Shown piece by piece: positions 28,191 to 54,657 of a DNA stretch of 64,000 bases. The stretch spans positions 186,001 to 250,000 of IMG/VR virus record IMGVR_UViG_3300050120_000152; one strand, 5' to 3'. The notes under the pieces are model-generated. The model was given only the letters and a program-made list of their open reading frames with translations. It had not been told where the DNA came from and searched no databases. The position numbers and the translations under genes were made by a program. Positions within the stretch are counted from its first letter, which is position 1, and the number at the start of each line of letters is the position of its first letter.

Positions 28191-28469
28191 TTATGCGGAC
28201 GGTGAAGGGCAAACATAATTTGCCATATTTGACTGAAGAGCAGTAATAGCATCTTCTAAGGTTAAATATACATTTGCATCAAGAACTGTCGCAGTTCCGG
28301 CATTACATTCTAATAAAATTAAATAAGATATGTTAGTTGCAACTGTATTGGGGGTAATTGGTACAACATTGATAATGGTTTGTAGACATGTACCTTTCTT
28401 AACAGAATTTCCATCAAGAATCCATGCTACATCATTTGTTTGTAATTTGTAAGTAACCGTGTAGGACAT
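28191..28469 (-). CDS. small protein resembling the N-terminal module of 53755..54657
   Basis: NDVAWILDGNSVKKGTC..I vs GDLIYYVVGGAVDYGVC.AI; TVLDANVY vs TVLVANAY. Confidence 0.6.
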   Translation of the reverse strand: MSYTVTYKLQTNDVAWILDGNSVKKGTCLQTIINVVPITPNTVATNISYLILLECNAGTATVLDANVYLTLEDAITALQSNMANYVCPSPSA

Positions 28470-28506
28470 GTATATTGCCTTCCCATAATGAGATATTTAT
28501 CACATT

Positions 28507-29247
28507 TTACTTTAATGACAAATCTTTATCTTTAAGTTTGTTGCCAAGATCATATAATTTATCCATATATCCATTATTTCTTAAAGTCTTGAACACTAAA
28601 TTCTCAAGGCTCATTTCGCCGCCACGAGAAATAGATGCTTTGCGCATATTCTTAATCTTATCCTGAAGAGCTTTAATAATAATTTCATTAGTATTACTAC
28701 CTTTAATAATATCATCAATTTCGTCCATTAAAGATTTGGCTTTAATTTTAATTTCTTTGGTATCATAAACTAATTTTTCTTCTTTGGTAGGTTTGCGAAT
28801 CCAATCATCTTGAATTAATGAAAAACATCCTGCATTACCCGAAAAGAATTCGGTAGGTGGTTGTACATAGACTTCAACGGCTGAACCTTTAATGGTAACA
28901 TCATGGCCCATATTCCACACGGTTTTCTTGGCTTTCATGCAATCATCAAGATTGAAATTATTGCTTTCACAATCTTTACATACCTTATCATAATCTACAA
29001 TAACATGTAAATCAATATCTGACATACGTGACCAGTTATAGTTAGCATTTGATCCCGTAACGAAAATTTCCATTACTTCTTCTTTAGAAACCTTAAGAAC
29101 GGTAAGAAATGAGTTGGCAACTTTTTCCAAGGCTTCTTTAACATCAGAATGCAATTTCATGTCTTTATCCCACAATGCCGGATTTAGGGTATCATGATAC
29201 TCTAGATGCGTTTTTAATCTTTTTAAGGAAATTTCATTCAATAACAT
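28507..29247 (-). CDS. pol-beta superfamily nucleotidyltransferase
   Basis: VTGSNANYNW...SDIDLHV, VEVY; MLLNE N-terminus. Confidence 0.85.
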   Translation of the reverse strand: MLLNEISLKRLKTHLEYHDTLNPALWDKDMKLHSDVKEALEKVANSFLTVLKVSKEEVMEIFVTGSNANYNWSRMSDIDLHVIVDYDKVCKDCESNNFNLDDCMKAKKTVWNMGHDVTIKGSAVEVYVQPPTEFFSGNAGCFSLIQDDWIRKPTKEEKLVYDTKEIKIKAKSLMDEIDDIIKGSNTNEIIIKALQDKIKNMRKASISRGGEMSLENLVFKTLRNNGYMDKLYDLGNKLKDKDLSLK

Positions 29248-29277
29248 TGTACTGATTCAATTGTTTATTATTTATCA

Positions 29278-30870
29278 TTATGCTGGGCATGTTCCCCAAA
29301 CTGGTCTAGCATCTGTCCATGCTGTTGCATTTGTATCAAAATCTGCTGGTAATGTTGAAATGAGTGTGACACACCAATGAGATAAATCTTGATTGAATGC
29401 TTCAGCATTTGCAAACATAGCAGACATATTTGATACTTTACTGGTATTCCATGTACCAATATCTTGATTGAATACTGAAGCACTTTGAAACATTTGACTC
29501 ATATCAGTTACATGACTGGTATCCCATGATGATAAATCTTGATTAAATGCTGAAGTATCATAAAACATATTATTCATATTAGTTACAGCACTAGTATTCC
29601 ATGATGATAAATCTTGATTAAATGCTGACGCACCACTAAACATACTATTCATATTAGTTACAGCACTAGTATTCCATGATGAAATATCTTGATTGAATAC
29701 TGAAGCACCATTAAACATATTAGACATATCAGTTAATGTTGTTGGTATTGATGATGGCACTTCATATACTGAAGTAGGAGGGACAATACTAGTCACATTA
29801 TATGTACCAAATGATAATATTTTAGAATTAGATGGTGGTACAGTACCATCCTGTTCATAACCAGATATGGATGATGAGTCGCCATACATTTTAACTATAT
29901 AAGTTCCAACAGAACCATAAGTATGTAATATATAAGTGGCATCAGACATAGTATCAATAGCTGATCCGTCACCCCAATCTAAAGTTATCCCAGAATCGGC
30001 ATCAACCTCAACTATTCCTGTTGAATCAAATTGAATTGTATATGGGGTCTGGGCAATTGCTGATGGGGTAGGAGTTGGAACAGGTGAATAAGGTACATAT
30101 TTTACTAAACTTATATTATCTATGGTATAATCATACCCATTAGGAGCATACATATTATAATTTGAGTCTGCATATAATGATATAGCTACTTGTATAGATG
30201 TTACCCCTGATGGAATTAATAGTTCATAATTAAATGATCCACTACTCATATTCGTGACGTTAAATATATCACTATTAGATACATTAATACTCATTAATGG
30301 AATATCTGATCTAGTTAACGATTGGGTTAAAGCATAAATTTCAATAATAGCATATTGGCACGCGCCTTCATTAAATCTGGCATTAAATTTATAATTACCG
30401 CCAGCCGTTACAGTCATTGGTGATGATGTAAAATCTACTTGCTGCGTTCCACTATTATTGGAAATAAACTTAGTTAGTATATCTGTTTGTACAACTGTAC
30501 CATTATTTGTAGTCCATGCGGTATTAGCCAACAAATTTGGGTAAATGACTGGCGATGGTGTTGGTGTCATTGTCAATGTTGATGATGGCTTAGGAGTTCT
30601 TGTAGGAGTGGGAGATAATGACTGTGAAATAGATGGTGTAGGAGTAATCAAAAATGTATTTTTATACACTTCAGCTCTACCAAAGGTACCATGTAGCGTT
30701 GGACTATTAAAAGTTTCATTGCTCATCGTATCGTACATAAAAATGGTGATCGAATCCCCATTAATATCAACAATGACACCATTTCTTATGTTTAGACTAT
30801 CAATTAGCCAAATATTGTCATTAATTTCCCAAGCATACCCATGTAAATTATATCTAGCCATATATGTCAT
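29278..30870 (-). CDS. modular surface protein: N-domain/TP linker/CBM-like/TP/PKD-like/5 DUF285 (BspA-like) repeats
   Basis: PTPS linkers; DWGDG..HTY; 25-aa FNQD.SSW.TS.VT.M..MF repeats; ends PVWGTCPA. Confidence 0.85.
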   Translation of the reverse strand: MTYMARYNLHGYAWEINDNIWLIDSLNIRNGVIVDINGDSITIFMYDTMSNETFNSPTLHGTFGRAEVYKNTFLITPTPSISQSLSPTPTRTPKPSSTLTMTPTPSPVIYPNLLANTAWTTNNGTVVQTDILTKFISNNSGTQQVDFTSSPMTVTAGGNYKFNARFNEGACQYAIIEIYALTQSLTRSDIPLMSINVSNSDIFNVTNMSSGSFNYELLIPSGVTSIQVAISLYADSNYNMYAPNGYDYTIDNISLVKYVPYSPVPTPTPSAIAQTPYTIQFDSTGIVEVDADSGITLDWGDGSAIDTMSDATYILHTYGSVGTYIVKMYGDSSSISGYEQDGTVPPSNSKILSFGTYNVTSIVPPTSVYEVPSSIPTTLTDMSNMFNGASVFNQDISSWNTSAVTNMNSMFSGASAFNQDLSSWNTSAVTNMNNMFYDTSAFNQDLSSWDTSHVTDMSQMFQSASVFNQDIGTWNTSKVSNMSAMFANAEAFNQDLSHWCVTLISTLPADFDTNATAWTDARPVWGTCPA

Positions 30871-30916
30871 TCTATTATAGCTATATTTAGTCTAATTTAC
30901 TACATGAATAATATTT

Positions 30917-31297: not shown

Positions 31298-31299
31298 AC

Positions 31300-32013: not shown

Positions 32014-32808
32014 TCAAATTGATAGTTTGTCTATATTATCAAGGCTATCCATATAATACCACTCTTTATATTGCATTGCATCAGATAAACAGCGTCGTCT
32101 AACCTGTACTGTACTACTAAAATTAAAATATTCTACTACCGCCGTTACACTAGGAAATGTTCCATTAGGAGTCATTATAACTCTATTAGATAATTTTATA
32201 TTGTTCGATGCAATAGGCACAATAGAATTATATGACCATTTATATCCTTTACAATTTGAAAATTTGCCTTCGGCAGTATATTTAATATTAGATGGTGATG
32301 TATTTACAAAATCAGCAGCTTCAGATAGGCACATAAACGTATGAGCTAATGTCCCATTAAGATGAAAACAAAAAATTTTTTTCTCGTGAAATAGACGTAA
32401 AGCCTTTTTACAATTTTCTGAAATTTTCTTTTTAGATTTTTTACTATGAACATGACCTCTAAATAATCCATTTTTAACTTGTTCTGATGGATTATCTTTA
32501 TAATTTTGTTTCTTTAAAGTTGAAATTTTTCTTTTAATCCATCCATATTGTTTATTGGTTTGTCTTCTATCAGTATCGTGAGTAGCCAATAATGATGCTG
32601 CAAATGCTAATCCCAAATTAAATGGATATATTTTTGTCAATAATTGATGGGCTAAATAATGTTCTTCGGGCGTTAACTTGACTATATTATTTGGGTCATT
32701 ACTCCCATTCATACATTTTGGAATTATGTGGTGTTTTTCACAATAACCGATTAGCTTCCGATCTTTTGCTTTACTAATTAAATTGTCATAAATTTTAATA
32801 TAATTCAT
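32014..32808 (-). CDS. HNH homing endonuclease with NUMOD1-like domains (Mob-like)
   Basis: YCEKHHIIPKCMNG...NIVKLTPEEHYLAHQLL; EAA.FV..SPSNI; TPNGTFPS; adjacent to nrdB. Confidence 0.85.
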   Translation of the reverse strand: MNYIKIYDNLISKAKDRKLIGYCEKHHIIPKCMNGSNDPNNIVKLTPEEHYLAHQLLTKIYPFNLGLAFAASLLATHDTDRRQTNKQYGWIKRKISTLKKQNYKDNPSEQVKNGLFRGHVHSKKSKKKISENCKKALRLFHEKKIFCFHLNGTLAHTFMCLSEAADFVNTSPSNIKYTAEGKFSNCKGYKWSYNSIVPIASNNIKLSNRVIMTPNGTFPSVTAVVEYFNFSSTVQVRRRCLSDAMQYKEWYYMDSLDNIDKLSI

Positions 32809-34002: not shown

Positions 34003-34011
34003 ATAGTTTCC

Positions 34012-37178: not shown

Positions 37179-37829
37179 ATGATGAATGATACCAAAATGC
37201 GAGATGGAATGCAACGATTTTATAATGAAGTCTCGGGTAGAGAAGTTTTCGTTATAGGTGGAGGCCCAAGCTTCCAATATGTTGACAAAAAAATGTTGGA
37301 AGGTAAATTGGTAGTATGTATAAACACTGCCTATAAAGAATTTAATAATCCTACTGCTTTATATTGGTGTGATGAAAGTTGGGTTGCTAATCATTATGAT
37401 AACATTATGAAGCATCAATGTCCATTACGGTTTACCGCTAGACATGCGGCAGATGGTCATATAACTAAAAATATTTTGGGAACTGGCAATAGCATTGTCT
37501 TGAAACGTACTGGTGATTTTGGTATAGACACTGATTTTAATCATGTTAAAGGAAATAATAGTGGCGCACATGTTATAAATTTGTTAGCTAATATGAAGGT
37601 TAGACGCATTATTTTATTGGGCTACGATTTAACCATGTCAAAAGGTAAATCTCATTGGCATGATGGACATGGATTACCTATGGCAAATCATATTTACAAT
37701 GAGTTATTTATCCCATGCTTGAATAGCATGGCAGATCCCTTGAAGAATTTAAAAATAGATATTGTAAATTGTTCGGTAGGCACTGCATTGAAATGTTTCA
37801 GAGAAGATAAATTGGAAAATTATGTATGA
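37179..37829 (+). CDS. Maf/CstII-like (GT42/DUF115 fold) putative nonulosonate transferase
   Basis: VIGGGPSF, CIN, NSGAH.INL...IILLGYD, HWH. Confidence 0.65.
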   Translation: MMNDTKMRDGMQRFYNEVSGREVFVIGGGPSFQYVDKKMLEGKLVVCINTAYKEFNNPTALYWCDESWVANHYDNIMKHQCPLRFTARHAADGHITKNILGTGNSIVLKRTGDFGIDTDFNHVKGNNSGAHVINLLANMKVRRIILLGYDLTMSKGKSHWHDGHGLPMANHIYNELFIPCLNSMADPLKNLKIDIVNCSVGTALKCFREDKLENYV

Positions 37830-38560
37830 TATCGTGTCTAATAGTAAATTTAAATTGTGCTAAACACACAGAAAATTTAATAAAAGATTTAGAACGTCAA
37901 ACTTATAATAATTTTGATATAACTGTAGTTGACCAAAATTCTACCGAACCATACACAAAAATATTATTAAATTCATTAACTTTTTCTGGTTATAATATAA
38001 TTAAAAATTCCTATAACAAACCACTAAATCTTATTTGGAATGAATTTATACGTAATTCTAAAAATGAATATTGTTCTTTTTTAAATAATGATATTCGTAT
38101 ACCGTATAATTTTCTCGATAATACCAAAACCATTCTTGATATTGAACCTAGCGTATCATGCGTAATTCATCCTACCAATCATCCGAATTGGTTTAAAACA
38201 CGTAAAATATTATCATATGATATACTAGATGATAGAACTCGCCAAGGATGGGATTTTACGTTTCGTAAGTCTCATTGGACAAATATTCCAAAATGTTTAG
38301 ATTTTTATTGCGGAGATGATTTTATTTTCGAAAATATTTACAATAATGATCATAAAGTTGCTATGGCAACCAGTTCACCTGTTATACATTTATTAGGTCA
38401 AACTAGAAAAAGCCCGTTAAATACTATTATACCTAATCGGAATCCTATTAAAGATATTGAAGAATATAAAAAATTAGGATACCGACACTACTTAAATGTG
38501 CTGGATAAATATTCGAAAATAGAACCTGAAATAGCCAAAATTTTTGAGGAAATCGAATGA
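37826..38560 (+). CDS. GT2-family glycosyltransferase
   Basis: VVDQNST, FLNNDI, YCGDDFI. Confidence 0.8.
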   Translation: MISCLIVNLNCAKHTENLIKDLERQTYNNFDITVVDQNSTEPYTKILLNSLTFSGYNIIKNSYNKPLNLIWNEFIRNSKNEYCSFLNNDIRIPYNFLDNTKTILDIEPSVSCVIHPTNHPNWFKTRKILSYDILDDRTRQGWDFTFRKSHWTNIPKCLDFYCGDDFIFENIYNNDHKVAMATSSPVIHLLGQTRKSPLNTIIPNRNPIKDIEEYKKLGYRHYLNVLDKYSKIEPEIAKIFEEIE

Positions 38561-39021
38561 ATATAGAAATAATTAAAGAACATAATGTTAGAATAGATGA
38601 TACGGTAAAAATTATTGGTACTGGAAAACTAATTTTACATTCTGGTGTACAAATTCGATCTTTCACCGTCATCGAATTAGATGGTGAATTAGAAATTGGG
38701 GAACGAAGCGTACTAGGTTATCATAACTTCGTTCAATGTTCGGGGACATGTAAGATCGGTGCTGGCACATTAATAGGCCCAAGTACAATATTATTAGCAT
38801 CTAGCCACCAAATAACGGATATTCCTCTAATTGAGGAACAAATACTTAAAAGCACTTTAATAATCGGAAATAATGTGTGGATTAGCGCTAATTGTACTAT
38901 CAATCATGGTATAATTTTAAACGATAACTGTATCGTTGCAGCAAATAGTTTTGTAAATAAAACTGTAGAGCGCAATGCTATTGTCGGAGGTTCACCAGCC
39001 AAATTTATACGGTATAGATAA
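38557..39021 (+). CDS. hexapeptide-repeat sugar O-acetyltransferase
   Basis: Left-handed beta-helix repeats; IGNNVWI, VAANSFV, VGGSPAKFI. Confidence 0.9.
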   Translation: MNIEIIKEHNVRIDDTVKIIGTGKLILHSGVQIRSFTVIELDGELEIGERSVLGYHNFVQCSGTCKIGAGTLIGPSTILLASSHQITDIPLIEEQILKSTLIIGNNVWISANCTINHGIILNDNCIVAANSFVNKTVERNAIVGGSPAKFIRYR

Positions 39022-41957: not shown

Positions 41958-44198
41958 ATGGCAACTATAACATATAAATGCAACATATGTGAAAGAAATA
42001 TTGATTTACTTGAAAATCCAATAGGACTAACCACATTTTCTAAATGTGTTATTACATACGGCTGCAAAGGTAAAATGTTATCGGTAAAACGTAATCAAGA
42101 TAATATCCGCGAAACTTTTCCCGTTGAAGTTCCGGGATTGATAGATTATAGTCCGCGTAACGTTCTATCAAACTTCAATCAAGTTATCCCGCTAACTACA
42201 TGGGTCATTACACACAATTTAAATACCATTCCGGTGGTAACAGTGTTTGTAGATAATACCACTGGTACGCAAACTGAGCTAAATCCTACTCAATTTACGG
42301 TTATTCCTATAAATTCTAATCAATTGAAAGTAGTGTTTACGACTGCATATAGTGGCTCGATACAATTGATTTCGAGAAATTCTATAAAAGTTAATCCAAC
42401 TATTGCAGCAGCACCTACTATATTAACACAAGTAACCTCTAATGGAAATTTTGTATTTGCTGTTCCAAAATATTTAACGAAATTTTCGTATCCACCTACA
42501 GTATTACCTGCTCCGGGGTTACCTTATGATTTAGCTTCTACCAAATTGAGAATAGAAGTGAGTATCCAGAAACCAAACGAAGAGACAATTGTTTGCACTG
42601 AATTTTTAAGCACTGATCTTAGTGGAACACCTTGGAATAGTTGGAATAGTATTTTAGTAAGAAAAAGAAAAAATTACTATCTATTTGCTATCAATATATT
42701 AAATTTTAGAACTTTTGGTGGTAATACTACACAATTTAACGATATTCCAGATGGAACCCGTTTACAAATAACCAGAGTAGATTATGGTACTGGTGTATTA
42801 CAACCAGTCGATACCGAAGGTTTATTTATTATGTTATCAAACTCGCCTTATACCATTAATGATAAAATAAAAGATTCAATTGTTGATGTTGGTGATATGG
42901 TAGATAATAATATTAATTATTTTACTTATAACACATCAGATTTTTTTGTCGATCCATCAAATGTAGATAGGACATATCCTGATATTAGTAAGGTAAATCC
43001 TGTAATCCCAGTAATTGCCCCCTTACCATCAATAACACCAACTATAACGCCATCAATAACCATAACACCATCAGTAACTTTAACACCACAGGTCACTCCT
43101 ACACCTACTCCTTCACCAATACCTTATAATTTACCCCCATATTTGGCTGAACTTAACTCTGATGGTACACCAGATACACATTTCATAGATAAACAATTAG
43201 ATTCTCATATGTATGTTTCATATGAAACTTCTGATGGTCATATCTACTTCGGCGGGGATACATCCACGTCCATTCCCGGTAATTATTCTTACCTAGGGCG
43301 TCTAAATTCTGATGGATCAATAGATACTACATTTACCAACTATAATTTAGATTATGATGTTGAAACAATATATCAAACTGCTGATGGTCACATTTATATA
43401 GGTGGAAACTTTTCCACGTTTAATGGTATATCTGTACGCGGATTTGTTCGATTAAATTCTGATGGATCATTTGATAGCACATTCGCTGGTGGGTGCGATG
43501 GTGATGTTATCACGATATGCCAAACTTTAGATGGTCATATTTATGTTGGCGGTGCTTTTAACACTATATGTGGAGCTTCATATAATGGTATTGCTCGACT
43601 ATCTGCAACAGGGGTAATTGATAGCACATTTATAGCACCAGTGTCAAGTTCTATATCAGTAAATTGCATCATACAAACTATTGATACCAATATTTATGTT
43701 TGTAATGCCTCCAATCCCACTACATATACTAATTTTTGTAGGTTGACTTCTGCTGGTATACTAGATACGTCTTTCACTGATTTGACGATTGATAATATAG
43801 TCAAGGTGGCATATCAAACTTCTGATGGATCGATCTACATTGGTGGCAGTTTTAATAATGTAGGAGGGTATTCCTACCCCAAGCTCGCCAAACTAAATTC
43901 GGATGGCACCATTAACAATGCATTTGCATTATCTAAACCCCAAGTAATATCAAATATAGAAATTTTTGGAGTAATATCAACTACCTATGTATACGCTATT
44001 ATGCAGGCTATTGATAGTAAAATTTATATAGGTAGTGACAACGTCTACATAAATGGAAATTCTTATACATATTTTAGTAGATTAAACTCTGATGGATCAT
44101 TTGATAATACATTCAATTCATTGAATTTAACTGGTAGTGTATATAATATTAATAAAATATCCTCTGGGGATATCTACATTTCTGGTGCATTTAATTAA
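41958..44198 (+). CDS. structural protein: CxxC N-domain/HNL module/TP linker/7 Delta-60 (DUF5122) repeats
   Basis: YKCNIC..KCVITYGCKG; W.ITHNL; 7x RLNSDG-type repeats. Confidence 0.8.
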   Translation: MATITYKCNICERNIDLLENPIGLTTFSKCVITYGCKGKMLSVKRNQDNIRETFPVEVPGLIDYSPRNVLSNFNQVIPLTTWVITHNLNTIPVVTVFVDNTTGTQTELNPTQFTVIPINSNQLKVVFTTAYSGSIQLISRNSIKVNPTIAAAPTILTQVTSNGNFVFAVPKYLTKFSYPPTVLPAPGLPYDLASTKLRIEVSIQKPNEETIVCTEFLSTDLSGTPWNSWNSILVRKRKNYYLFAINILNFRTFGGNTTQFNDIPDGTRLQITRVDYGTGVLQPVDTEGLFIMLSNSPYTINDKIKDSIVDVGDMVDNNINYFTYNTSDFFVDPSNVDRTYPDISKVNPVIPVIAPLPSITPTITPSITITPSVTLTPQVTPTPTPSPIPYNLPPYLAELNSDGTPDTHFIDKQLDSHMYVSYETSDGHIYFGGDTSTSIPGNYSYLGRLNSDGSIDTTFTNYNLDYDVETIYQTADGHIYIGGNFSTFNGISVRGFVRLNSDGSFDSTFAGGCDGDVITICQTLDGHIYVGGAFNTICGASYNGIARLSATGVIDSTFIAPVSSSISVNCIIQTIDTNIYVCNASNPTTYTNFCRLTSAGILDTSFTDLTIDNIVKVAYQTSDGSIYIGGSFNNVGGYSYPKLAKLNSDGTINNAFALSKPQVISNIEIFGVISTTYVYAIMQAIDSKIYIGSDNVYINGNSYTYFSRLNSDGSFDNTFNSLNLTGSVYNINKISSGDIYISGAFN

Positions 44199-44221
44199 TA
44201 AATAACATAAAAGAACACATC

Positions 44222-46471
44222 ATGCAAATAAATTTTCGACAAGGTATTATAAGCAGCCAATCCTTACCACGATTTTTACAAAAAAATCTTAATGGTAATA
44301 TTGATTTTAATGCTTCTGACTCACAAACGATATTAAATTTTGCAGATGGAGCTTCAAATTATCTTTGGTATGAACCAATATCTATTACAGATGCATGGAT
44401 TACCCCAACCGAACAAGCATGTTGGTTATATTGGGATATTAGTACAGAAAATGCTACACGTAGTTTTGGATATACCTTATATAACCCATTTTCTGTAGTA
44501 GCACCATCCAATCCCCAACTCAATCAGATGTATTTTAATACGTCTACATTCAAATATCAGTCATGGACAGGCCAATACTGGCGTGACGTTATCCGCGTCA
44601 TTGCAGGGGCTGTAGATGCCTCTGGCAACATTATTACACAGAGTAGTGGAACACAGATCAATTTGTATCAAACTGTAACTACTGACGTTATAGTTTATGA
44701 TTTTACACAAATGCCGATTAAGAATTATACCCCAAATGGTTATGAATTCTTAAATAAATTTACTATAACTAATTTTAAAAATAATTCAAAGGACTCATTC
44801 AAATACGAAAGAATTGTTAATGCCAATGGAATGGCATCAGAAGATATAATTAAACATTATTGTGTTACTTGGAAGGATTATAATACATTACAACTTGCTG
44901 ATCCTGAAAAAATCAATAATCCAGCTTTTGCTTTAGCTGAAAAAATGGTAAATACCGGAGAAATAATAAGTTTATGTACTGAAGGATTTGTTGTCAACAG
45001 AACAGACTGGAATTGGCCTAATCCGCCACATACATCATTGTATGTTGGAACTAATGGTATATTAACTCCTGAATTTGATCCTACATTTTCTAAATCGCTC
45101 CAATTAGTAGGTTACATTGTGTCGCCAAATACAATATATGTCAATTTTAATAATCAATATTCAAAATATATTACGAGTAATAATACTATATTACCGACTA
45201 TCTCAGTTACACCAACCCCAGAATCTACTAGCACAATGACGCCTACGCCAACTATAACTCCAACATTGACTATGACACCAACGGCAACAGTAACCATCAC
45301 TCCTACTATTACTATAACTCCAACATTGACTATGACACCAACGGCAACAGTAACCATCACTCCTACTATTACTATAACTCCAACACCAGCTATAGTCGGA
45401 ACGGTAGAACTTTTTGCTGGTGGATATTTTCAATCATTTCATAGTCAAGCATATGGCGGATTAGCTAAAATACATTCTGATGGTACTATAGATACTGCAT
45501 TGACTCCTTTCATATTTGATAATTCTGACGGGGATGGTGTTGATACATTATATAGAACTGCTGATGGTAAAATTTATATGTGTGGATATTATATTTCCTT
45601 AAATGGTTCAACCACCTATAGATATTTAACTAGATTAAATTCTGATGGGACATTGGACAACACATTTACCAATTTAAATTTGGATAATGAAGCATATACA
45701 GCATTACAAACTATTGATGATAAAATTTATATTGGTGGATGGCTTACCAGCATTGGTGGACAATCTGTTACTGGATTAGCACGATTAAATTCTGATGGTA
45801 CATTAGATAATACGTATACACCACCTGTAATAGACCATACAATGATAGGTGGAATAGTTTCTATACAGCATATGCATCAAACAATTGATGGTAAAATTTA
45901 TATTGGGGGTAGTTTTACCACTATTGATGGCAATGCATATGGTCATTTAGCTAGGTTAAATTCTGATGGTACGTTGGATACTACATTTACTAACATTGGA
46001 TTGCCATTGGGTAGTAACACTAATCATTTATTCGCAATCTGTCAAACAATAGATGGTAAAATTTATATCAGTTGTAGTGGTTTGTGTAGATTAAATTCTG
46101 ATGGTACTATAGATAATACATTCGTTGCTCCTAATTCAACATCACCATTAACAATATACCAAACTATTGATGGTAAAATATATATGGGTAATATGACTGT
46201 ATTTAATGGAACATCCTATCAATATTTAGGATTATATCGAATGAATTCTGATGGAACTTTAGATAATAATTTTGTTCCTATAAATAATGGAAGTTATATA
46301 GAAGTCATATATCAAACCTCGGATGACAAAATATATATGTGCGCAACCCGTAATGCTTCAGGTACATCACCATTGTCGCCTATTAGATTAAATTCTGACG
46401 GTACATTAGATAATACGTTTATAACAGGAAATAATACTCCTAGTATACTTACATTACTAGAAGTTATTTAA
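44222..46471 (+). CDS. fibre/spike-like protein: 'INFRQGI' N-domain/TP linker/7 Delta-60 repeats
   Basis: N-domain paralogous to 48850; 7 RLNSDG-type repeats; ATAAATA upstream. Confidence 0.8.
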   Translation: MQINFRQGIISSQSLPRFLQKNLNGNIDFNASDSQTILNFADGASNYLWYEPISITDAWITPTEQACWLYWDISTENATRSFGYTLYNPFSVVAPSNPQLNQMYFNTSTFKYQSWTGQYWRDVIRVIAGAVDASGNIITQSSGTQINLYQTVTTDVIVYDFTQMPIKNYTPNGYEFLNKFTITNFKNNSKDSFKYERIVNANGMASEDIIKHYCVTWKDYNTLQLADPEKINNPAFALAEKMVNTGEIISLCTEGFVVNRTDWNWPNPPHTSLYVGTNGILTPEFDPTFSKSLQLVGYIVSPNTIYVNFNNQYSKYITSNNTILPTISVTPTPESTSTMTPTPTITPTLTMTPTATVTITPTITITPTLTMTPTATVTITPTITITPTPAIVGTVELFAGGYFQSFHSQAYGGLAKIHSDGTIDTALTPFIFDNSDGDGVDTLYRTADGKIYMCGYYISLNGSTTYRYLTRLNSDGTLDNTFTNLNLDNEAYTALQTIDDKIYIGGWLTSIGGQSVTGLARLNSDGTLDNTYTPPVIDHTMIGGIVSIQHMHQTIDGKIYIGGSFTTIDGNAYGHLARLNSDGTLDTTFTNIGLPLGSNTNHLFAICQTIDGKIYISCSGLCRLNSDGTIDNTFVAPNSTSPLTIYQTIDGKIYMGNMTVFNGTSYQYLGLYRMNSDGTLDNNFVPINNGSYIEVIYQTSDDKIYMCATRNASGTSPLSPIRLNSDGTLDNTFITGNNTPSILTLLEVI
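45251..45385 (+). repeat. perfect 60-bp tandem duplication (2.25 copies)
   Basis: Unit actataactccaacattgactatgacaccaacggcaacagtaaccatcactcctactatt. Confidence 0.95.
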
Positions 46472-46490
46472 TTATAATATAAATTTTATA

Positions 46491-46565
46491 CAATTAGTAG
46501 GTTACATTGTGTCACCAAATATCATATATATTAATTTTGGTAAACAATATACCAAGTATCAATAA
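46491..46565 (+). pseudogene. intergenic relic of the 3' end of the INFRQGI anchor domain
   Basis: QLVGYIVSPNIIYINFGKQYTKYQ* vs QLVGYIVSPNTIYVNFNNQYSKYI at 45101; first 23 bp identical. Confidence 0.75.
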
Positions 46566-46640
46566 GATAAATAGCTTATCATCCTATAAACCGTATGAAG
46601 TCGTATAAATATTCCATTGAATATATATTTGGAATCATGA

Positions 46641-48797
46641 ATGTCTACTCCCATAAGTCCTACCCCATCGGTAACTCCTACTATCTCTGTAACGCCAACA
46701 CCCATAAGTCCTACCCCATCGGTAACTCCTACTATCTCTGTAACGCCAACACCCATAATAGTAAGGAATATGAAACAGATGTTTCGTCGCTATAGTGATG
46801 GAACCTTGGTTGCACGAGAACAACAATATGATTTATTAAGGGGATTTCAGTTCACCCAAGCTGAAGACGCACTTACATGGGAAGTTTGTCATAATATGCA
46901 ATCTGATATGTTTGATGTAGCTATTGTAGTTAATGATATAATGGTCAATGCTGATATACAAATTATAGATAAATGTAAAATATTGATAAAATTTAATGTA
47001 CCCACATCAGGTTATGTAAATTTATTGTTCATGGATAGCTTTCCTACAGTATCAGTATGTGATTGTATAGCACCATCAACAACACCAGCGCCACCAGCAC
47101 CAACATTAACACCAACACCATCTGTATCAGTAACATCAACCCCATCAGGATTAACTCCATTAACCTTAGTATCAACAAATAATGTTGATGTTACTTACAC
47201 TGTATATACATGTGGAGCATCCAATAATGCTTCCATTGATTGGGGTGATGGCACTATTGATCCTATCCCTAATGGTGCTGTCGATGGGAGTGATAACGCA
47301 TGTTATAATGGTATAGTACATATCTATAGTACAGCAGGAACGTATACAATTAAGGTATATGGAGATTATATTGATAATGGCACAAATTCCGGTGGAATTT
47401 CCATAACTACCGATGTATCAGCTACCGCAGAGTTAACTTCATGGGGAACTTATAATGTAAATCATGTCCGGTTGCCATCAGGAATCATTTCGGTGCCATC
47501 ATCCATTCCAACAACATTAACAGATATGTCTAATATGTTTAATGGTGCTTCAGTATTCAATCAAGATATTAGTTCATGGAATACCAGCAATGTAACTAAT
47601 ATGAATAATATGTTTAATAGTGCTGCAGTATTCAATCAAGATATTAGTTCATGGAATACCAGTAATGTAACTAATATGTCTGATATGTTTGATAGTGCTA
47701 ATGATTTTAATGGAAATATTGGTTCATGGAATACCAGTAAGGTAACAGATATGTCTTATATGTTTTATAGTGCTTATGCATTTAATCAAGACCTTTCATT
47801 ATGGGATACCAGTAATGTAACTAATATGGTTATCATGTTTGCTAATGCTAATGCTTTTAATGGAAATATTGGTTCATGGAATACTAGTAAGGTAACAGAT
47901 ATGTCTTATATGTTTGGCGGTGCATTAGCGTTTAATCAAGACATATCCTCATGGAATACTAGTGCTGTAATTAATATGAATAATATGTTTTATGGTGCGC
48001 GAGTATTCAATCAAGATATTAGTTCATGGAATACCAGTAATGTAACAAATATGTCTAATATGTTTGATAGTGCGTATGCTTTTAATGGGAATATTGGTTC
48101 ATGGAATACTAGTAATGTAACTAATATGAGTAATACATTTAATGGTGCTGCTGCCTTTAATCAAGACCTTTCATTATGGGATACCAGTAAGACAACTGAT
48201 ATGAATAATATGTTTGCTGGTGCAGCATTTAATCAAGATATTTCATCATGGAACACAAGTAATGTAACTACTATGAATAGTATGTTTTATGATACTCCAG
48301 CATTTAATCAAGATTTATCATCATGGGATACCAGTCATGTAACTGATATGAGTCAAATGTTTCAAAGTGCCTCAGTATTTAATCAAAATATTGGTGCATG
48401 GAACACAATTAATGTAATTAATATGAATAATATGTTTAATTCTGCACTATTATTCAATCAGGATATTTCAACATGGAATACCAGTAATGTAACTGATATG
48501 AGTCAAATGTTTGTACATGCTAATGTATTCAATCAAAATATTGGTTCATGGAATACCAGTAATGTAACTACTATGTATGATATGTTTGATAGTGCGTATG
48601 CTTTTAATGGAAATATTGGTACATGGAATACCAGCAATGTAACTAATATGAATAATATGTTTAATAGTGCTGCAGTATTCAATCAAGATTTATCTCATTG
48701 GTGTGTAACCTTAATACCATCAATACCATCTAATTTCGCGGCTTTTACACCAGCTTGGACATTAGCAAAACCAGTCTGGGGAACATGTCCACCGTAA
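46641..48797 (+). CDS. modular surface protein: TP repeat/HNL module/TP/PKD-like/16 DUF285 repeats
   Basis: DWGDG..HIY; 25-aa DUF285 repeats; ends PVWGTCPP. Confidence 0.85.
46650..46757 (+). repeat. perfect 51-bp tandem duplication
   Basis: cccataagtcctaccccatcggtaactcctactatctctgtaacgccaaca x2 + cccata. Confidence 0.95.
48298..48370. repeat. 73-bp perfect inverted repeat with 29480-29552
   Basis: Base-by-base comparison; a second 48-bp identity links 47523-47570 and 29683-29730. Confidence 0.9.
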
Positions 48798-48849
48798 TGA
48801 CTTATTAAATACATAAACCAATAAATACTATGATAAAACTATTGCCATT

Positions 48850-51800
48850 ATGCTTATAAATTTTCGTCAAGGCATCATAAATGCTCAAATAAACAATAAT
48901 TTCCTTCAATTGGTTAATGGAAATGTAAACATTAATGTTGATGTAGATAGAGTGGATTTAGCTTTTGCTTATGGTAATCATAACTATTTGTTTACAGAAG
49001 CACAGCAGGTATTAAGTGCATGGAACGGATTACCGTCAAATCAAACAGCCTACTTGTATTGGGATATAGACTTAATTTCTGGTATCAGAACTTATGGATT
49101 TACCGTCGTAGCCCCAAGTTTCGGTGGTCAATATCCAAGCTCGCCATTAATTAATCAACATTTTTTTAATTATACTACCAATAAAATGTATGTATGGTCA
49201 GGTACCATTTGGCAAGAAAAATTAAGAGTATTTGCTGGCTCAGTGCAAGACAATGCCATATTAGTAGCAAATGGCTTAGGATCACAAGTTAATTTATATG
49301 GTCAGGTTAATTTGGGCTATATTCTATTCAATTCCCAGAATAAACCGTTAAGAATAACCGATAATACAAATATATTTTATTTCGTTACTACCGAAGATGA
49401 AATTCATACCCAACAAGATTTAAATAATGCATATAAAATTGATGCATTATTGATGGATGGTAGAGCCATAGAACCAATCCCAGCATTTTCTTGTATTACA
49501 TGGAAAGGCCCAAAGCAAACTGGTGTAGCATCCTATGTTGATTATCAGCGACCATGTATAGGCATAGCTGCGGAATCATCTGGTGTGGATGAAGTTAAAC
49601 AATTCGTAACCAAAGGATTTTTAACAAATTATATAAATTGGAACTTTGATGTTCCACCAAGCACACCATTATTTGTAGGGATTACGGGACAAGTTACTAC
49701 TAGTGTACCCCAACAGTATTCATTGCAGCGCATAGGTCATGTGGTATCACCAAATACCATATTTGTAAATATTGAAGAAATAATATTATTAGAATCATTT
49801 CAAACAACCCCAACTCCAACTCCATCATCTTCCCCTACCCCAACATTGACACCATCACCTACACCAAGTGTTACACCCACGGCAACTCCAGTAATACCAT
49901 CAGGATTTTCGTTATATGCTGGGGGAGCGATGAGCAATGTTGGTGGTATATTAGGAATAGATTCGTTGAATGCTGATGGAACATTAAACACAGCATTTAC
50001 CAATTTGCAAGTTGATGGTTATGTTGATTATATGTATCAAACAGCTGATACAAAAATCTATACGCTAGGTTCCTTTACTTCTATAGGTTCTCATTATTTT
50101 CCAACTTTTGCTAGATTAAATTCTGATGGAACTTTCGATACAACATTTACTGCTATAACATTCAATAGTGAACCATTAGATATGCACCAAACTGCTGATG
50201 GTAAAATATACCTTGTGGGAAATTTTTCGGAGGTTGAGGGTGATACGACAACTTATACGAATGGCTTGGTTAGATTAAATAGCGACGGTACATTAGATAC
50301 ATCCTATACGCCTCCAACATTTGGTACGTTTCCATATCTATCCACATTATATCAAACAGCTGATGGTAAAATTTATATCGGCGGCACTTTTACTACTACA
50401 GTCGATGGAAATAATTACAATAGCTTGATTAGATTAAATGCTGATGGTACATTAGATACATCTTTCACTAATTTATTATTAGATAATGACGTTTCCAAAG
50501 TTTACCAAATATCATCTGGTAAAATATATATTGCTGGAGATTTCACCACTGTTGGTGGAAACAGCTATAGTAACCTAGCTAGATTAAATTCTGATGGAAC
50601 TGTCGATACGACATTTACTGCTATAACATTTAACAACCCCGTATATTCAGTATACCAAACTATTGATAATAAAATTTATGTTGTTGGTAGTTTTACTACT
50701 CTAAATGGAAATACTTTCCAAAATTTGGCTAGATTAAATTCTGATGGTACAGTGGATAGTACAATAGGTAATTTACAATTAGCAGGTCAGGCTTATAATG
50801 TCACACAAACCGCTGATGGTAAGATATATGTAGGTGGTAATATTGTACAATCAGTAATCGGTACGGCTGGTGTATATAATATGGTAAGACTTAATTCCGA
50901 TGGAACTTATGATAACACGTTTATCGATTCCTTAAAATTTAGTGGTACTATTAATAATATATTACAAATAAGTAATGGCACTATATATGTTGCTAGTAAT
51001 GGAATGGCACAAGCATATAATAATATGGTTAGATTATTTAGTTCTGGTACAGTAGACATAACATTTACTGAGTTGGGACTTCAACAAACTTATGGTGAAG
51101 TAGATGCCCTATTACGCTCTCATGTTGATAATAAAATATATATGGGCGGACAATTTATGCAGGTAGAAGCCTTAAATTATAGAAGTTTAGCTAGATTAAA
51201 TGCTGATGGTACATTAGATACATCATATACTAATTATGATATTATAGGTGGTGTACTTGATCTGTATCAAACTGTTGATGATAAAATTTATGTCAGCGGC
51301 AACTTTAATAGTGTTGGTGGCGCTACTTACAATTATCTTGCACGATTAAATGCTGATGGTACATTAGATACTAGTATGGTAGATTTAGCATTAAATAATA
51401 TTGTAAATTCTATATATCAAACTATTGATAATAAAATTTATGTCGGTGGCGGTTTTGATAGCAGCAGTACAGTTGGTTTTAATAGTTTAAATAGATTAAA
51501 TTCTGATGGAACATTAGATACAACATTTATAGATGTCGCTTTTCCGGCAGACTATTCCATTTACTATATTACACAAACATTAGACGGTAAAATTTATGTG
51601 GGGGGACAATTTTCTACAGTTGGGGTTTCAACGTATAATCATCTTGCACGACTGAATTCTGATGGAACGTTAGATACAACATTTACAGACTTAGGGTTAA
51701 ATGGTAATGTATTCGCAATATACCAAACTGTTGATGGTAAAATTTATATCGGTGGAGATTTCGTTGCTGGTGGAGCTAATACGTATGACTATATATTACG

Positions 51801-52002
51801 ACTAAATTCTGATGGAACATTAGATACAACATTTATAGGTGGTGGGATAAGTAGTGGTATACGAGTGCTACAACAATCTACAAGTGGAAAATTATTGATA
51901 GGTAGACATTCTGCGATAGAACTGTATAATTCTGATGGAACTTTTGATAGTGATATTATAACTAGTAATGGTAACATCATGGCACTATTGATTAATAATT
52001 AA
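48850..52002 (+). CDS. fibre/spike-like protein: 'INFRQGI' N-domain/TP linker/14 Delta-60 repeats
   Basis: 14 RLN[SA]DG-type repeats; ATAAATA upstream. Confidence 0.85.
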   Translation: MLINFRQGIINAQINNNFLQLVNGNVNINVDVDRVDLAFAYGNHNYLFTEAQQVLSAWNGLPSNQTAYLYWDIDLISGIRTYGFTVVAPSFGGQYPSSPLINQHFFNYTTNKMYVWSGTIWQEKLRVFAGSVQDNAILVANGLGSQVNLYGQVNLGYILFNSQNKPLRITDNTNIFYFVTTEDEIHTQQDLNNAYKIDALLMDGRAIEPIPAFSCITWKGPKQTGVASYVDYQRPCIGIAAESSGVDEVKQFVTKGFLTNYINWNFDVPPSTPLFVGITGQVTTSVPQQYSLQRIGHVVSPNTIFVNIEEIILLESFQTTPTPTPSSSPTPTLTPSPTPSVTPTATPVIPSGFSLYAGGAMSNVGGILGIDSLNADGTLNTAFTNLQVDGYVDYMYQTADTKIYTLGSFTSIGSHYFPTFARLNSDGTFDTTFTAITFNSEPLDMHQTADGKIYLVGNFSEVEGDTTTYTNGLVRLNSDGTLDTSYTPPTFGTFPYLSTLYQTADGKIYIGGTFTTTVDGNNYNSLIRLNADGTLDTSFTNLLLDNDVSKVYQISSGKIYIAGDFTTVGGNSYSNLARLNSDGTVDTTFTAITFNNPVYSVYQTIDNKIYVVGSFTTLNGNTFQNLARLNSDGTVDSTIGNLQLAGQAYNVTQTADGKIYVGGNIVQSVIGTAGVYNMVRLNSDGTYDNTFIDSLKFSGTINNILQISNGTIYVASNGMAQAYNNMVRLFSSGTVDITFTELGLQQTYGEVDALLRSHVDNKIYMGGQFMQVEALNYRSLARLNADGTLDTSYTNYDIIGGVLDLYQTVDDKIYVSGNFNSVGGATYNYLARLNADGTLDTSMVDLALNNIVNSIYQTIDNKIYVGGGFDSSSTVGFNSLNRLNSDGTLDTTFIDVAFPADYSIYYITQTLDGKIYVGGQFSTVGVSTYNHLARLNSDGTLDTTFTDLGLNGNVFAIYQTVDGKIYIGGDFVAGGANTYDYILRLNSDGTLDTTFIGGGISSGIRVLQQSTSGKLLIGRHSAIELYNSDGTFDSDIITSNGNIMALLINN

Positions 52003-52004
52003 TA

Positions 52005-52622
52005 ATGCTATCTAACTATTTCTCGCATTTATATTGTATAAATTTAGATAATAGACCAGATAGATGGGCTGAAACTCTATTAGAATTTAAAAAATATAAT
52101 ATACTAAATGTTGAACGAATATCTGCTGTGCAAGGTTCCAAGTTAAAGCGCAACCCATGTATAATGAATAGTGGGCAATGGGGCTTATTATATACATGGA
52201 TCAATATATTAAATGATGCAATAGATAAAGACTATTCATCGATATTAATTATGGAAGATGATATCGTGTTTGCCGAGAATTTTATTGAATTATTTCAAGG
52301 CTATATATCAGAACTCCCTGATGACTGGGATATGGTATATATTGGCGAAGTTACAAAAAGAGGTAAACATGGCTGTCGCAGAATTTCAGATCATATCTCA
52401 AAATTAGATAATACATTGGGACTACATTGTGTTGCCATAAATTATACAATATACAAAACATTGTTAACATTATTAACATCACCCGTAAAGAATGGCGAAG
52501 ACTATTTCTTAGACATGCAACGAACCAAAAAGGTATATGGTATTTTCCCTATATTAGCATATCAGAGAAAATCTTATTCAGATATTGAGAAGCGAGTCGT
52601 AAACTATCATGGATTAGGATAA
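52005..52622 (+). CDS. GT25-family glycosyltransferase
   Basis: CINLDNRPDRW, ERISAV, ILIMEDD, DWDMVYIG, P.LAYQR. Confidence 0.85.
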   Translation: MLSNYFSHLYCINLDNRPDRWAETLLEFKKYNILNVERISAVQGSKLKRNPCIMNSGQWGLLYTWINILNDAIDKDYSSILIMEDDIVFAENFIELFQGYISELPDDWDMVYIGEVTKRGKHGCRRISDHISKLDNTLGLHCVAINYTIYKTLLTLLTSPVKNGEDYFLDMQRTKKVYGIFPILAYQRKSYSDIEKRVVNYHGLG

Positions 52623-52671
52623 AAATCCCGATCATTAATAAATACTAAGATAATAAATTTAGGTTATTTTA

Positions 52672-53463
52672 ATGCAATATATTGATGATATCGAGTTAAT
52701 TGGTGGTTCTATCCATGGGGCCAAAATTGAGAATTTAAATCTTGATCCTGATTTTTTCATTACTGATAGTGGGCGAATATATTTCAATATTAGTGGAACT
52801 AAACTTAGATTAAATAATGGCGTAGAATGGATTGATCTATCTTTACCATCAAACTTTAGCAACTTAATTACTACCTTGGGCGCTAATTGGATTAATACCG
52901 ATTTTACTTTTAATCCAACCGAGTTTAATGCATTAACAAATATTACCGGATTAACCAGCAATGATTCATTATTTGATGTTATTTCACAATTAGATAATGC
53001 CATTAATTCTAATGGGGGTTCAACTCTATTATCATTAAATGATGTAGCAGAAACTACAGTATTGGACGCCGGAGATTTATTATATTATAATGGTGATAAT
53101 TTTACTTTTACTAATATTGATGCCATCATACAAACTTATGGACATATAAATTTTTCAGGATTGGAAGATGTTTCAGTTACTGGAGCTATAGCCAATGATA
53201 TTATTGTCTATGATGGTGCTAATTATGTACCCGCAAATCCATTTTTCTTTGGTACCGACTATTCATCAGTCATAGAACACACTATTATTCATACCCTAGG
53301 CGTACAATTGTGTGGTATAACAGTAATTAATGCAAATACTTTTACTGTTATCAATGATGCAACTATCGTGTTCACTGATATTAACACCGTTGATATAACA
53401 TTACAAATTGCTGCTCCGATATATGTAGTATTGGTATCACCACTACAATTTGGTGGTGGTTAA
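52672..53463 (+). CDS. structural (fibre-associated) protein
   Basis: IENL..DP...GRIYFN; L.DV repeats; C-terminal H.LG module; late promoter upstream. Confidence 0.65.
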   Translation: MQYIDDIELIGGSIHGAKIENLNLDPDFFITDSGRIYFNISGTKLRLNNGVEWIDLSLPSNFSNLITTLGANWINTDFTFNPTEFNALTNITGLTSNDSLFDVISQLDNAINSNGGSTLLSLNDVAETTVLDAGDLLYYNGDNFTFTNIDAIIQTYGHINFSGLEDVSVTGAIANDIIVYDGANYVPANPFFFGTDYSSVIEHTIIHTLGVQLCGITVINANTFTVINDATIVFTDINTVDITLQIAAPIYVVLVSPLQFGGG

Positions 53464-53735
53464 TGTCTAACTTGAACTTCAATACCATTTGAGCATTCAA
53501 TAGAATAAATATCTCCCATAATTCCAATTTTGGCTTGGGTAATATGTTCAGTTGCACCACACAAAGACTGATATTTTTCAATATTTTCAATTTTGGCTGG
53601 ATATTTAATAGTAATACCTAACAATAATCCAATGAATACACCACAAAAAAATGCGAAAATGATTGTTTCTAATTTTTCTGACATGATATTCTCAATATTT
53701 ACCTTCATATTTATCAAACATGATAAATAGTACAT
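53460..53735 (-). CDS. small membrane protein (possible i-spanin/lipoprotein-like)
   Basis: TM helix then two Cys; start uncertain (likely MSEK). Confidence 0.5.
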   Translation of the reverse strand: MYYLSCLINMKVNIENIMSEKLETIIFAFFCGVFIGLLLGITIKYPAKIENIEKYQSLCGATEHITQAKIGIMGDIYSIECSNGIEVQVRH

Positions 53736-53754
53736 ATAACTTGGGATTCTTATT

Positions 53755-54657
53755 ATGTTCTTTAATGTCGGTGATTTAATTTATTATGTGGTTGGTGGCG
53801 CGGTTGATTATGGTGTTTGCACTGCTATCAATTATACTTCTAATGTTGTTGTTAGCTATGTAGTAACAACTCTTGAAACTCCATTTACTCCTACTACAGT
53901 GTTAGTTGCAAATGCATATCCATCAGGATATGGTTTGATTCCAACCATTACCCCAACCCCTTCTCCTTCTATTGGATCAAGTCCAACCCCAACCCCAACT
54001 CATACGGTTACTCCTACTCCATCATCTTCACCAGCAGTACCAGTAAATATTTTTCCAACAGCATTAACAGATTGGACTTCTCCTAATGGTAATACTATTG
54101 CATTAGTTAATGGTGAGTTAGTGTTAACTAGTATATCAGCTGGCCCAACTTTTGTGCCAGCATATTTAGCCACTATTACCGTAAGTGCAAATACTTATTA
54201 TAAATTCTCCTTGAGATTCTTGGAAGGTACTTGTAGAAATGCTAGAATACAAGTATTTGGTAACGATACAGCAGCATTTGAACTTGCTGGCCCTCCTGCA
54301 CCAACAGTGAATGGTACTTTAATTAATAATGGTTATACTGATAGTGGATCAATATCGGCGAAGTTTAATTCAAAAACATCAACTACATTATATGTAGTAG
54401 TTTATTTATATGCTGATTCAAACTTTACGATAGCTGCCCCAACTGGCACAACATATAAAATTGCAGATACCTTCTTGGAACAGGATTATTCATATGTACC
54501 AGTAACACCTACACCATCACCTACAGCATCATTATCAGTAACACCTACCATTTCGGTAACACCATCTATTACAACTTCGATATCAGTAACCCCAACAATA
54601 TCAGTAACACCTACTATAACACCTACTATAACGGTGACACCAACACCAACACACTAA
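53755..54657 (+). CDS. modular surface protein: N-module/TP linker/CBM-like/terminal TP tail
   Basis: CBM-like domain paralogous to the one in 29278..30870 (YKF..RF.EG.C..A.I; LYADSN...AP.G..Y.I). Confidence 0.75.
   Translation: MFFNVGDLIYYVVGGAVDYGVCTAINYTSNVVVSYVVTTLETPFTPTTVLVANAYPSGYGLIPTITPTPSPSIGSSPTPTPTHTVTPTPSSSPAVPVNIFPTALTDWTSPNGNTIALVNGELVLTSISAGPTFVPAYLATITVSANTYYKFSLRFLEGTCRNARIQVFGNDTAAFELAGPPAPTVNGTLINNGYTDSGSISAKFNSKTSTTLYVVVYLYADSNFTIAAPTGTTYKIADTFLEQDYSYVPVTPTPSPTASLSVTPTISVTPSITTSISVTPTISVTPTITPTITVTPTPTH

Follow-up and report, generated by a model that had tools for sequence, protein, structure and literature searches.

We analysed a stretch of 64,000 nucleotides (nt) of viral DNA, hereafter the window, which corresponds to bases 186001-250000 of the IMG/VR record IMGVR_UViG_3300050120_000152, and which encodes a set of modular, putatively fibre-forming proteins built of N-terminal anchors, linkers rich in Thr, Pro and Ser, and diverse C-terminal heads. 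The record is 340,344 bp long, carries direct terminal repeats and is rated complete. Positions given here are those of the window and genes are designated by their first coordinate; the prefix G000 refers to coordinates on the whole genome record, and L016, L017 and the like to loci of relatives in IMG/VR. The genome possesses the genes that characterise T4-superfamily myoviruses, i.e. those for a Gp23-type major capsid protein (320.9 bits), sheath, gp3-like protein, baseplate wedge and portal. The capsid protein is nearest to those of the Xanthomonas phages XacN1 and Xoo-sp13 and of the Stenotrophomonas phages CM1 and RAS14 (64-67% identity), and the window encodes an NrdA with about 50% identity to that of Rak2-like jumbo phages. 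These capsid relatives, the completeness of the record and the near-identical DNA present in peat metagenomes of two studies identify an uncultured T4-superfamily jumbo myovirus from peat, belonging to the XacN1 lineage. All frames are open under genetic code table 11.

The original prediction had described, between positions 28191 and 54657, a combinatorial set of at least eight surface proteins in which shared modules recur in different arrangements. The modules do recur there (Table 1), and the set reaches well beyond these bounds: about 19 proteins genome-wide share one plan, nine of them inside the window, and the members outside it include four more PARCEL proteins, a fourth Delta-60 protein and a protein of 3498 amino acids (aa). 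Most modules had been described as joined by Thr/Pro linkers, of which we found 34 in 19 open reading frames (ORFs) genome-wide, totalling 1,463 residues (T 33%, P 24%, S 12.5%); a gp5-like lysozyme protein encoded outside the window also carries one.

Table 1. Positions of the modular protein genes and associated features in the window (residue ranges in brackets)
Position	Strand	Length	Content	Remark
11448-11801	+	117 aa	PKD-like unit (35-106) and start of the junction that precedes DUF285 in paralogs	stand-alone fragment
28191-28469	-	92 aa	small N-module alone (profile positions 8-72)	ends in CPSPSA, where paralog linkers start
29278-30870	-	530 aa	N-module (4-73), Thr/Pro linker (74-111), CBM-like unit (114-261), Thr/Pro linker (262-276), PKD-like unit (279-365), PARCEL/DUF285 (376-530)	
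37179-41921	+		six closely spaced sugar-modifying genes	directly upstream of the fibre genes
41958-44198	+	746 aa	four-Cys/HNL anchor (1-350), Thr/Pro linker (354-394), Delta-60 propeller (395-746)	
44222-46471	+	749 aa	INFRQGI anchor (1-317), Thr/Pro linker (322-390), Delta-60 propeller (414-748)	
45251-45385			perfect 60-nt tandem duplication	within the linker of 44222
46485-46562	+	26 codons	remnant of the end of an INFRQGI anchor	follows 44222; shares the frame of 46641, from which four stops separate it
46604-46611	+		TATAAATA, T4-type late-promoter motif	29 nt upstream of the 46641 ATG
46641-48797	+	718 aa	Thr/Pro linker (1-40), HNL (69-131), Thr/Pro linker (143-174), PKD-like unit (180-279), PARCEL/DUF285 repeats (290-718)	without anchor
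46650-46758			perfect 51-nt tandem duplication	within the first linker of 46641
48850-52002	+	1050 aa	INFRQGI anchor (1-313), Thr/Pro linker (313-352), two Delta-60 propeller stretches (370-1043)	
52005-52622	+		family 25 glycosyltransferase (PF01755, 32.4 bits, cut-off 24)	amid the fibre genes
52672-53463	+	263 aa	C-terminal HNL module (184-255)	
53755-54657	+	300 aa	N-module (1-62), Thr/Pro linker (61-98), CBM4/9-like unit (102-243), Thr/Pro linker to the stop (245-300)	no head

Module sharing among the proteins of the set

The seven instances of module sharing that had been proposed were all reproduced with profiles. Delta-60 repeats occur in 41958, 44222 and 48850 (TIGR02608: 84.6, 114.9 and 243.8 bits, cut-off 76.5), the same genes also matching Pfam DUF5122 (PF17164: 151.9-382.5 bits, cut-off 27), and DUF285/PARCEL repeats in 29278 and 46641 (PF03382: 192.3 and 673.3 bits, cut-off 25; TIGR02167: 87.8 and 250.9 bits, cut-off 30). 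The INFRQGI anchor common to 44222 and 48850 extends from residue 1 to about residue 315 with 34-37% identity, and the N-module, linker and unit resembling a carbohydrate-binding module (CBM) are shared by 29278 and 53755 with 31.6% identity over 266 aa. This CBM-like unit has no Pfam match (PF02018), and a profile search of the PDB returned nothing significant (E 0.56); its look-alikes in the Atlas, which serve as leads only, are CBM_4_9 proteins and phage proteins fusing CBM_4_9 to SU10-adaptor or C1q domains (feature score 0.92, structural TM 0.65-0.71).

The PKD-like unit is present in 29278, in 46641 and in 11448, where a profile built from paralogs finds it with an E-value of 2.8e-10; this last gene, listed in the original prediction among the proteins of the set, is only a fragment. 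The unit remains below the Pfam gathering cut-offs in 29278 (18.8 and 16.4 bits against 27 for PF00801 and 23.5 for PF18911) and in the paralog at G000:316473 (23.1 bits, cut-off 23.5). Since the paralogs are homologous in this unit yet fall below the PKD cut-offs, the wording "PKD-like" is the right one. The 11448 fragment is located amid a multi-copy family of at least seven small ORFs (128-188 aa; positions 7829-13800), which have in common a C-terminal motif of about 27 residues, YN.LL.IVED...IEEFT.G.F.Y.

Two modules, HNL and the N-module of 28191, are invisible to pairwise BLASTP and phmmer comparisons and required profiles. When 1.84 billion representative proteins were searched with residues 61-145 of 41958, 157 matched, so that this module of the four-Cys anchor occurs in at least 157 representative clusters. 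The profile made exclusively from these external homologues recovered HNL in 46641 (residues 69-131, E 1e-9) and 52672 (residues 184-255, E 1.8e-4), as well as in two genes outside the window, G000:51208 and G000:271341. In 41958, the HNL module is present as predicted, as part of a larger conserved N-terminal domain of 350 aa with four cysteines. The gene 52672 is kept just downstream of anchor genes in L016, L017 and L018, with orthologues 37-52% identical, and its Atlas look-alikes are phage tail trimerisation proteins, again a lead only. For 28191, the N-module was matched with an E-value of 1.7e-5 by a six-sequence profile, the next best match being at 0.094, and with 0.0046 by the four training sequences used before two sequences from relatives joined the profile.

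At least four kinds of anchor can be distinguished in the genome: the INFRQGI anchor, composed of a shoulder-like and a beta-tulip-like sub-domain, the 350-aa four-Cys/HNL anchor, the 70-aa N-module and, outside the window, a phrog_15511-type domain. The latter heads three tandem paralogs at G000:44236-49146, each consisting of this domain, a Thr/Pro linker and a different C-terminus; XacN1-like phages have six phrog_15511 places each, and the domain has a short motif in common with the INFRQGI anchor (hhalign 88%, E 2.8e-6). The heads comprise Delta-60 beta-propellers and PARCEL/DUF285, PKD-like and CBM4/9-like units, to which relatives add ConA-like lectin units and propellers of WD40 and BNR type. 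The heads had been described as glycan- and protein-binding, a plausible role of the CBM4/9-like unit and, in the L016 relative, of the ConA-like units.

Exchange of heads on conserved anchors

A combinatorial set would be called into question by architectures fixed in all relatives; the comparison showed that the heads differ among them. Orthologous anchors are 53-77% identical as far as the last residue before the linker, beyond which other heads, or none, are found. Two contigs, L016 (350 kb) and L017 (175 kb), are syntenic with the window. The anchor of 41958 is conserved at 61-63% up to residue 346-349, where the L017 protein stops at 347 aa, as an anchor alone, and the L016 protein continues with a different tail of 260 aa. 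That of 44222 is conserved at 57-59% up to residue 313-317, followed in L016 by a 620-aa linker and a WD40-like propeller and in L017 by a 340-aa part of no assignment. The anchor of 48850 (59-63%) bears Delta-60 in L017 and stops in the linker in L019, and the CBM-like unit of 53755, 30% identical in L016, is followed there by three Laminin_G_3 units. Other INFRQGI homologues (53-66% in the anchor) carry a WD40-like propeller, Delta-60 with Laminin_G_3 or no known family, and one at 37% identity carries a BNR-type propeller. In 12 of 13 comparisons the anchor alignment ends next to the linker, at residue 312-317 for INFRQGI or 346-350 for the four-Cys anchor, the sole exception being P0002, whose alignment runs into its own Delta-60 head.

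The genome itself retains what may be a scar of such an exchange. The anchor remnant listed in Table 1 starts 14 bases after the stop of 44222, has 69% aa identity with the INFRQGI anchor (E 1.7e-6) and 89.6% nt identity over 48 nt with positions 45101-45148; 46641, which follows it, starts directly with a linker. An independent Logan contig covers positions 45356-46679 with zero differences. The simplest reading of this arrangement is that recombination at the junction separated 46641 from an INFRQGI anchor to which it had been fused, either by loss of the anchor or by displacement of 46641. The gene is 49% identical to its intact orthologue in L019 (ORF 6284-7969). In this same relative, an anchor-plus-linker gene is followed by a separate small HNL ORF in another frame (L019 9000-9480), and a 2086-aa ORF, the orthologue of the 3498-aa protein, has a linker at its end and precedes a linker-led HNL/PKD/DUF285 gene in a different frame (L019 6100-6420); such junctions result from either fission of genes at their linkers or frameshifts within the repeats.

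The linkers also bear marks of rearrangement in their DNA. Besides the two perfect tandem duplications, linkers of different genes have 17-45 identical nucleotides in common. The longest of these identities, 45 nt, is between the second linker of 29278 (30043-30087, residues 262-276) and the second linker of its paralog at G000:316473 (G000:317214-317261). As the two proteins are only 53% identical overall, it suggests a recent gene conversion within the linker. Three proteins, 53755, 28191 and L019 8001-9104, break off at a linker or inside one. Over positions 42800-48797, contigs of two peat runs were compared with the record: those of the source run are identical to the record, and those of the second run derive from the same phage at low depth. 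They break at both perfect tandem duplications, and the joints listed for them, which lie within the Delta-60 and PARCEL repeats, are most likely due to mapping from one copy of a repeat to another. These contigs gave no sign of an alternative architecture, although rare variants may be missing from them.

The original prediction further supposed a system that lets the virion swap its heads, and this mechanism finds no support. The complete genome has neither the RVT_1 match that a diversity-generating retroelement of the Mtd type would require nor the Resolvase match expected with an invertible segment of the Gin/Cin type. In the absence of both reverse transcriptase and invertase, swapping is to be understood as evolutionary recombination and not as a programmed switch.

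Taken together, we consider it probable that these genes encode late virion fibres made of a conserved N-terminal anchor, a Thr/Pro/Ser linker and exchangeable binding heads, and that the heads are changed by recombination. The N-terminal domain would fix the protein to the virion, the flexible linker, encoded by short tandem repeats, would give it reach, and one or more C-terminal modules, held away from the particle, would bind surfaces for adhesion or receptor recognition. Such fibres would be expressed late and sit on the tail, neck or head, and new combinations would be produced where anchor and linker meet and within the repetitive linker DNA, by gene fission, gene fusion and ordinary recombination. 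Of the anchor-linker-payload display originally proposed, the architecture is real and the payloads do differ at the linker; display on the virion has indirect support.

One may object that there is no system at all, and that the locus records an ordinary expansion and decay of tail-fibre genes, with linkers as mere low-complexity spacers and 28191, 11448, 53755 and 46641 as debris. Mosaicism is a general property of the fibres of tailed phages, truncated and anchor-less members exist, the remnant is separated by four stops and no switching enzyme is encoded. We nevertheless judge this quite unlikely: the frame of 46641 is intact over its 718 aa, has its own late promoter and an intact orthologue in L019, the breakpoints fall at the linker in all comparisons except that of P0002, and conservation of the linkers and of the neighbouring sugar-modifying genes reaches XacN1. 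This objection differs from the reading of exchangeable fibres mainly in emphasis.

Anchor families and the probable virion context

The INFRQGI anchor was found at 18 IMG/VR loci, always from residue 1, in proteins of 367 to more than 2978 aa and on contigs of 32-61% GC; some genomes have two or three such genes in tandem. The heads at these loci include WD40-like propellers, a true PKD domain, phage tail repeats and tail-fibre PHROGs. The domain has no Pfam entry and no tblastn match among cultured phages, XacN1 included, and a megablast of positions 41958-52002 against cultured phages gave no match. Its AlphaFold model (predicted local distance difference test, pLDDT, 82.5) presents two sub-domains. 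Residues 1-151 resemble the HFTV1 tail fibre, the shoulder of the receptor-binding protein (RBP) of lactococcal phage p2, Mtd and TssK (Z 4.8-7.9), the likeness to the middle domain of Mtd being at the level of the fold only. For residues 195-318, the likeness is to the base of the phi29 head fibre and to beta-tulip capsid decoration proteins (Z 7-10.3 over 94-115 residues, with 9-18% identity; Foldseek E 0.007-0.2). At the level of homology, profile positions 218-308 correspond to residues 149-238 of the neck-fibre protein gp82 of phage A-1(L) (E 3.2e-9), which lie within gp82C, the outward-extending domain (PMC10966104). The profile match is confined to these residues and leaves gp82N, the neck-binding part (residues 1-125), unmatched.

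These resemblances could be taken to mean that the INFRQGI proteins are head fibres, the beta-tulip forming a trimeric decoration on the capsid lattice, like the base of phi29 gp8.5, from which linker and propeller project. The best matches of residues 195-318 are indeed decoration or cement proteins (HFTV1, Adjutor, Patience, Pam3 and T1; Z 8.6-10.3), the phi29 base follows at Z 7.0-7.1, and several paralogs per genome would suit a jumbo capsid, whose three-fold sites are numerous and non-equivalent. This placement seems unlikely to us, since the beta-tulip-like sub-domain is homologous to a part of a neck fibre that extends outwards, rather than to one bound to the capsid. Moreover, residues 1-150 resemble shoulders that bind the baseplate, and the homologues have tail-fibre repeats, with the L019 genes adjoining a sheath gene.

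The N-terminal domain of 41958 represents a second widespread family, likewise absent from Pfam, with 137 of the 150 matches listed spanning the whole domain. Most listed members have 320-350 aa, i.e. the anchor alone, and others reach 1261 aa. Residues C8, C11, C30, C36, W82 and H86 are invariant, and the four cysteines may form a zinc ribbon. With the model of this anchor (pLDDT 90), Foldseek returned only generic matches to tandem Ig/FN3 domains; in a wider structure search, the HNL part alone found neighbours, the Ig-like domains of phage tail and neck proteins (Z 5-7.4), a likeness that corresponds to a common arrangement. The anchor is present at 36-39% identity in ORF370 and ORF372 of XacN1, which adjoin gp3-like and sheath genes.

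The motif TATAAATA, the T4 late-promoter consensus, occurs in 74 copies in the genome. Upstream of the 475 genes, 37 copies lie within 80 nt of a gene, where 4.1 would be expected, and 26 of these 37 sit 20-29 nt before the ATG. The genes so marked include those for terminase, portal, baseplate wedge, baseplate hub and some homing endonucleases, and 46641 is preceded by the same type of promoter. Scans for sigma-70 promoters and terminators gave no more matches than in shuffled sequence. Members of the set also stand within baseplate and tail operons, here and in XacN1: at G000:284084, a baseplate wedge gene with a late promoter is followed by the genes for the 3498-aa linker protein, an HNL/linker/Delta-60 protein and a gp3-like protein. 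The gene at G000:22722 contains a PHROG 11591 domain, annotated "virion structural protein". From the folds and homologies of the anchors, this late promoter and these operons we infer that the proteins belong to the virion; their attachment, its site, the formation of trimers and the ligands of the heads are likewise inferred.

Besides 46641, the motif is found in the window upstream of 32014-32808 and of 58116-59327. The former, on the minus strand, adjoins ribonucleotide reductase genes, has the late motif 21 nt upstream and an HNH-like motif visible by eye, and is probably a homing endonuclease gene; two other genes with the late motif elsewhere in the genome were confirmed as such.

Proteins released from the cell or displayed on it, binding for example polysaccharide, biofilm or competing cells, with modules captured from host surface proteins, would account for the presence of Delta-60 and PARCEL repeats, which are typical of bacterial surface proteins according to the family descriptions. 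We find this highly improbable for a set whose anchors have matches among the folds of phage fibres and decoration proteins and in a neck-fibre protein, whose member 46641 has a late promoter of the terminase/portal/baseplate type, and of which other members lie within baseplate and tail operons; no N-terminal hydrophobic signal was seen by eye in the translations.

Several points nevertheless weigh against virion fibres. The authors of the XacN1 study saw no tail fibres by electron microscopy, which would also suit proteins outside the particle; their paper ties no ORF to the stained glycoprotein bands and its supplement lists no detected ORFs. The phage studied here is itself uncultured. The fold matches of the INFRQGI anchor are middling (Z 7-10) and point variously to capsid, neck and baseplate. 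Finally, the three-part plan is not universal, 46641, 53755 and 28191 lacking either anchor or head, and some of the anchor-less or headless members may be decaying fragments.

Sugar-modifying genes, known systems and implications

The six genes packed upstream of 41958 comprise two MptE-like genes, a GT2 gene, a hexapeptide O-acetyltransferase gene, a Capsule_synth-like gene and a 419-aa gene of no assignment. The MptE-like pair is a lead only, its scores of 24.0 and 28.5 bits being below the PF01973 cut-off of 34.6, with no NCBIfam match. All six are syntenic in L016 and L017 (52-68% identity), and in XacN1 the orthologues of an MptE-like gene and of the 419-aa gene, ORF373/374, likewise precede fibre genes, whose products have Thr/Pro linkers of 50-240 aa. 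XacN1 virions contain glycoproteins revealed by periodic acid-Schiff (PAS) staining. The conservation of this linkage in L016, L017 and, in part, XacN1, the long linkers of the latter and its stained virion glycoproteins make it plausible that the Thr/Pro/Ser linkers are O-glycosylated by the products of these genes and of the glycosyltransferase gene at 52005, which would result in a particle with mucin-like glycoprotein fibres; we propose this tentatively, as a possibility somewhat short of even. NeuB is absent from the genome and the phage itself therefore makes no nonulosonic acid. Further downstream in the window, an HtrL_YibB-family gene (62040-63743, minus strand) and a 403-aa gene (58116-59327, plus strand) have syntenic counterparts downstream of the L018 fibre genes, and in L035 and L036 an HtrL_YibB gene is also near a 339-aa anchor-only homologue. 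Most of the window has a GC content of about 33%; its first 8 kb (1-8000) are at 41-43%, against 29-35% elsewhere.

Conserved anchors with swapped heads are already a known property of phage fibres. As in T7-like and K1-5-like podophages, the branched tailspike sets of Klebsiella and CBA120-type phages and the RBP of lactococcal phage p2, whose shoulder resembles INFRQGI residues 1-151 (Z 7.0-7.2), the N-terminus is conserved, the C-terminus is replaced and several paralogs occur per genome. Unlike in these modular RBPs, the junction is here a long Thr/Pro/Ser tandem-repeat linker, and the heads are beta-propellers, PARCEL repeats and lectin-like units instead of depolymerases or beta-helices. 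The neck fibre of A-1(L) (gp82-gp81-gp80; PDB 8keg), related through gp82, also ends in a carbohydrate-binding module (PMC10966104), but it consists of separate trimers arranged in a chain; in the proteins described here, linkers connect the domains within a single polypeptide. With phi29 gp8.5 and the decoration proteins of the lambda gpD class, the likeness concerns the fold of anchor residues 195-318, the phi29 fibre emerging from such a base; it is restricted to the fold level, and an extra shoulder domain precedes it here. Counterparts from the same lineage are ORF369, ORF370 and ORF372 of XacN1 and the six phrog_15511 paralogs of each XacN1-like genome, with Thr/Pro linkers in the products of ORF370 and ORF372, the 41958 anchor being that of ORF370 and ORF372; the XacN1 proteins are longer (1088-1317 aa), have other C-terminal parts and are annotated as hypothetical.

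Two further parallels are analogies only. Rhs and contact-dependent inhibition (CDI) toxin loci contain orphan C-terminal cassettes downstream of the active gene, and the displaced module of 46641, preceded by a short piece of the conserved region, recalls them; the protein class is unrelated, and this module is equipped with a start codon and a late promoter of its own. The Thr/Pro-rich, O-glycosylated linkers of bacterial cellulases and cellulosomal proteins are similar to those described here in composition and in serving as flexible spacers between a carbohydrate-binding module and other domains, but the setting would here be a phage particle. The "moraphage" paper was considered as a precedent and set aside, its lineage being unrelated, and among publications on DUF285 and phages, judged by title and abstract, none is about this fibre system.

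What is new is the scale of the set, the uniformity of its Thr/Pro joints, two undescribed anchor families, the kinds of heads, the scar within the genome and the pairing with sugar-modifying genes. This pairing can be tested in XacN1, a cultured phage, and O-glycosylation of the linkers, if true, would constitute a lineage-wide, phage-encoded glycosylation of virion fibres. The INFRQGI and four-Cys/HNL domains represent widespread anchor families, and the catalogue of anchors, joints and heads aids the prediction of adsorption proteins in uncultured jumbo phages and helps to pick fusion points for chimeric fibres in laboratory phages. Tailed phages alter their binding chiefly by exchanging heads on conserved anchors, and the joints of this process are unusually clear in this lineage.

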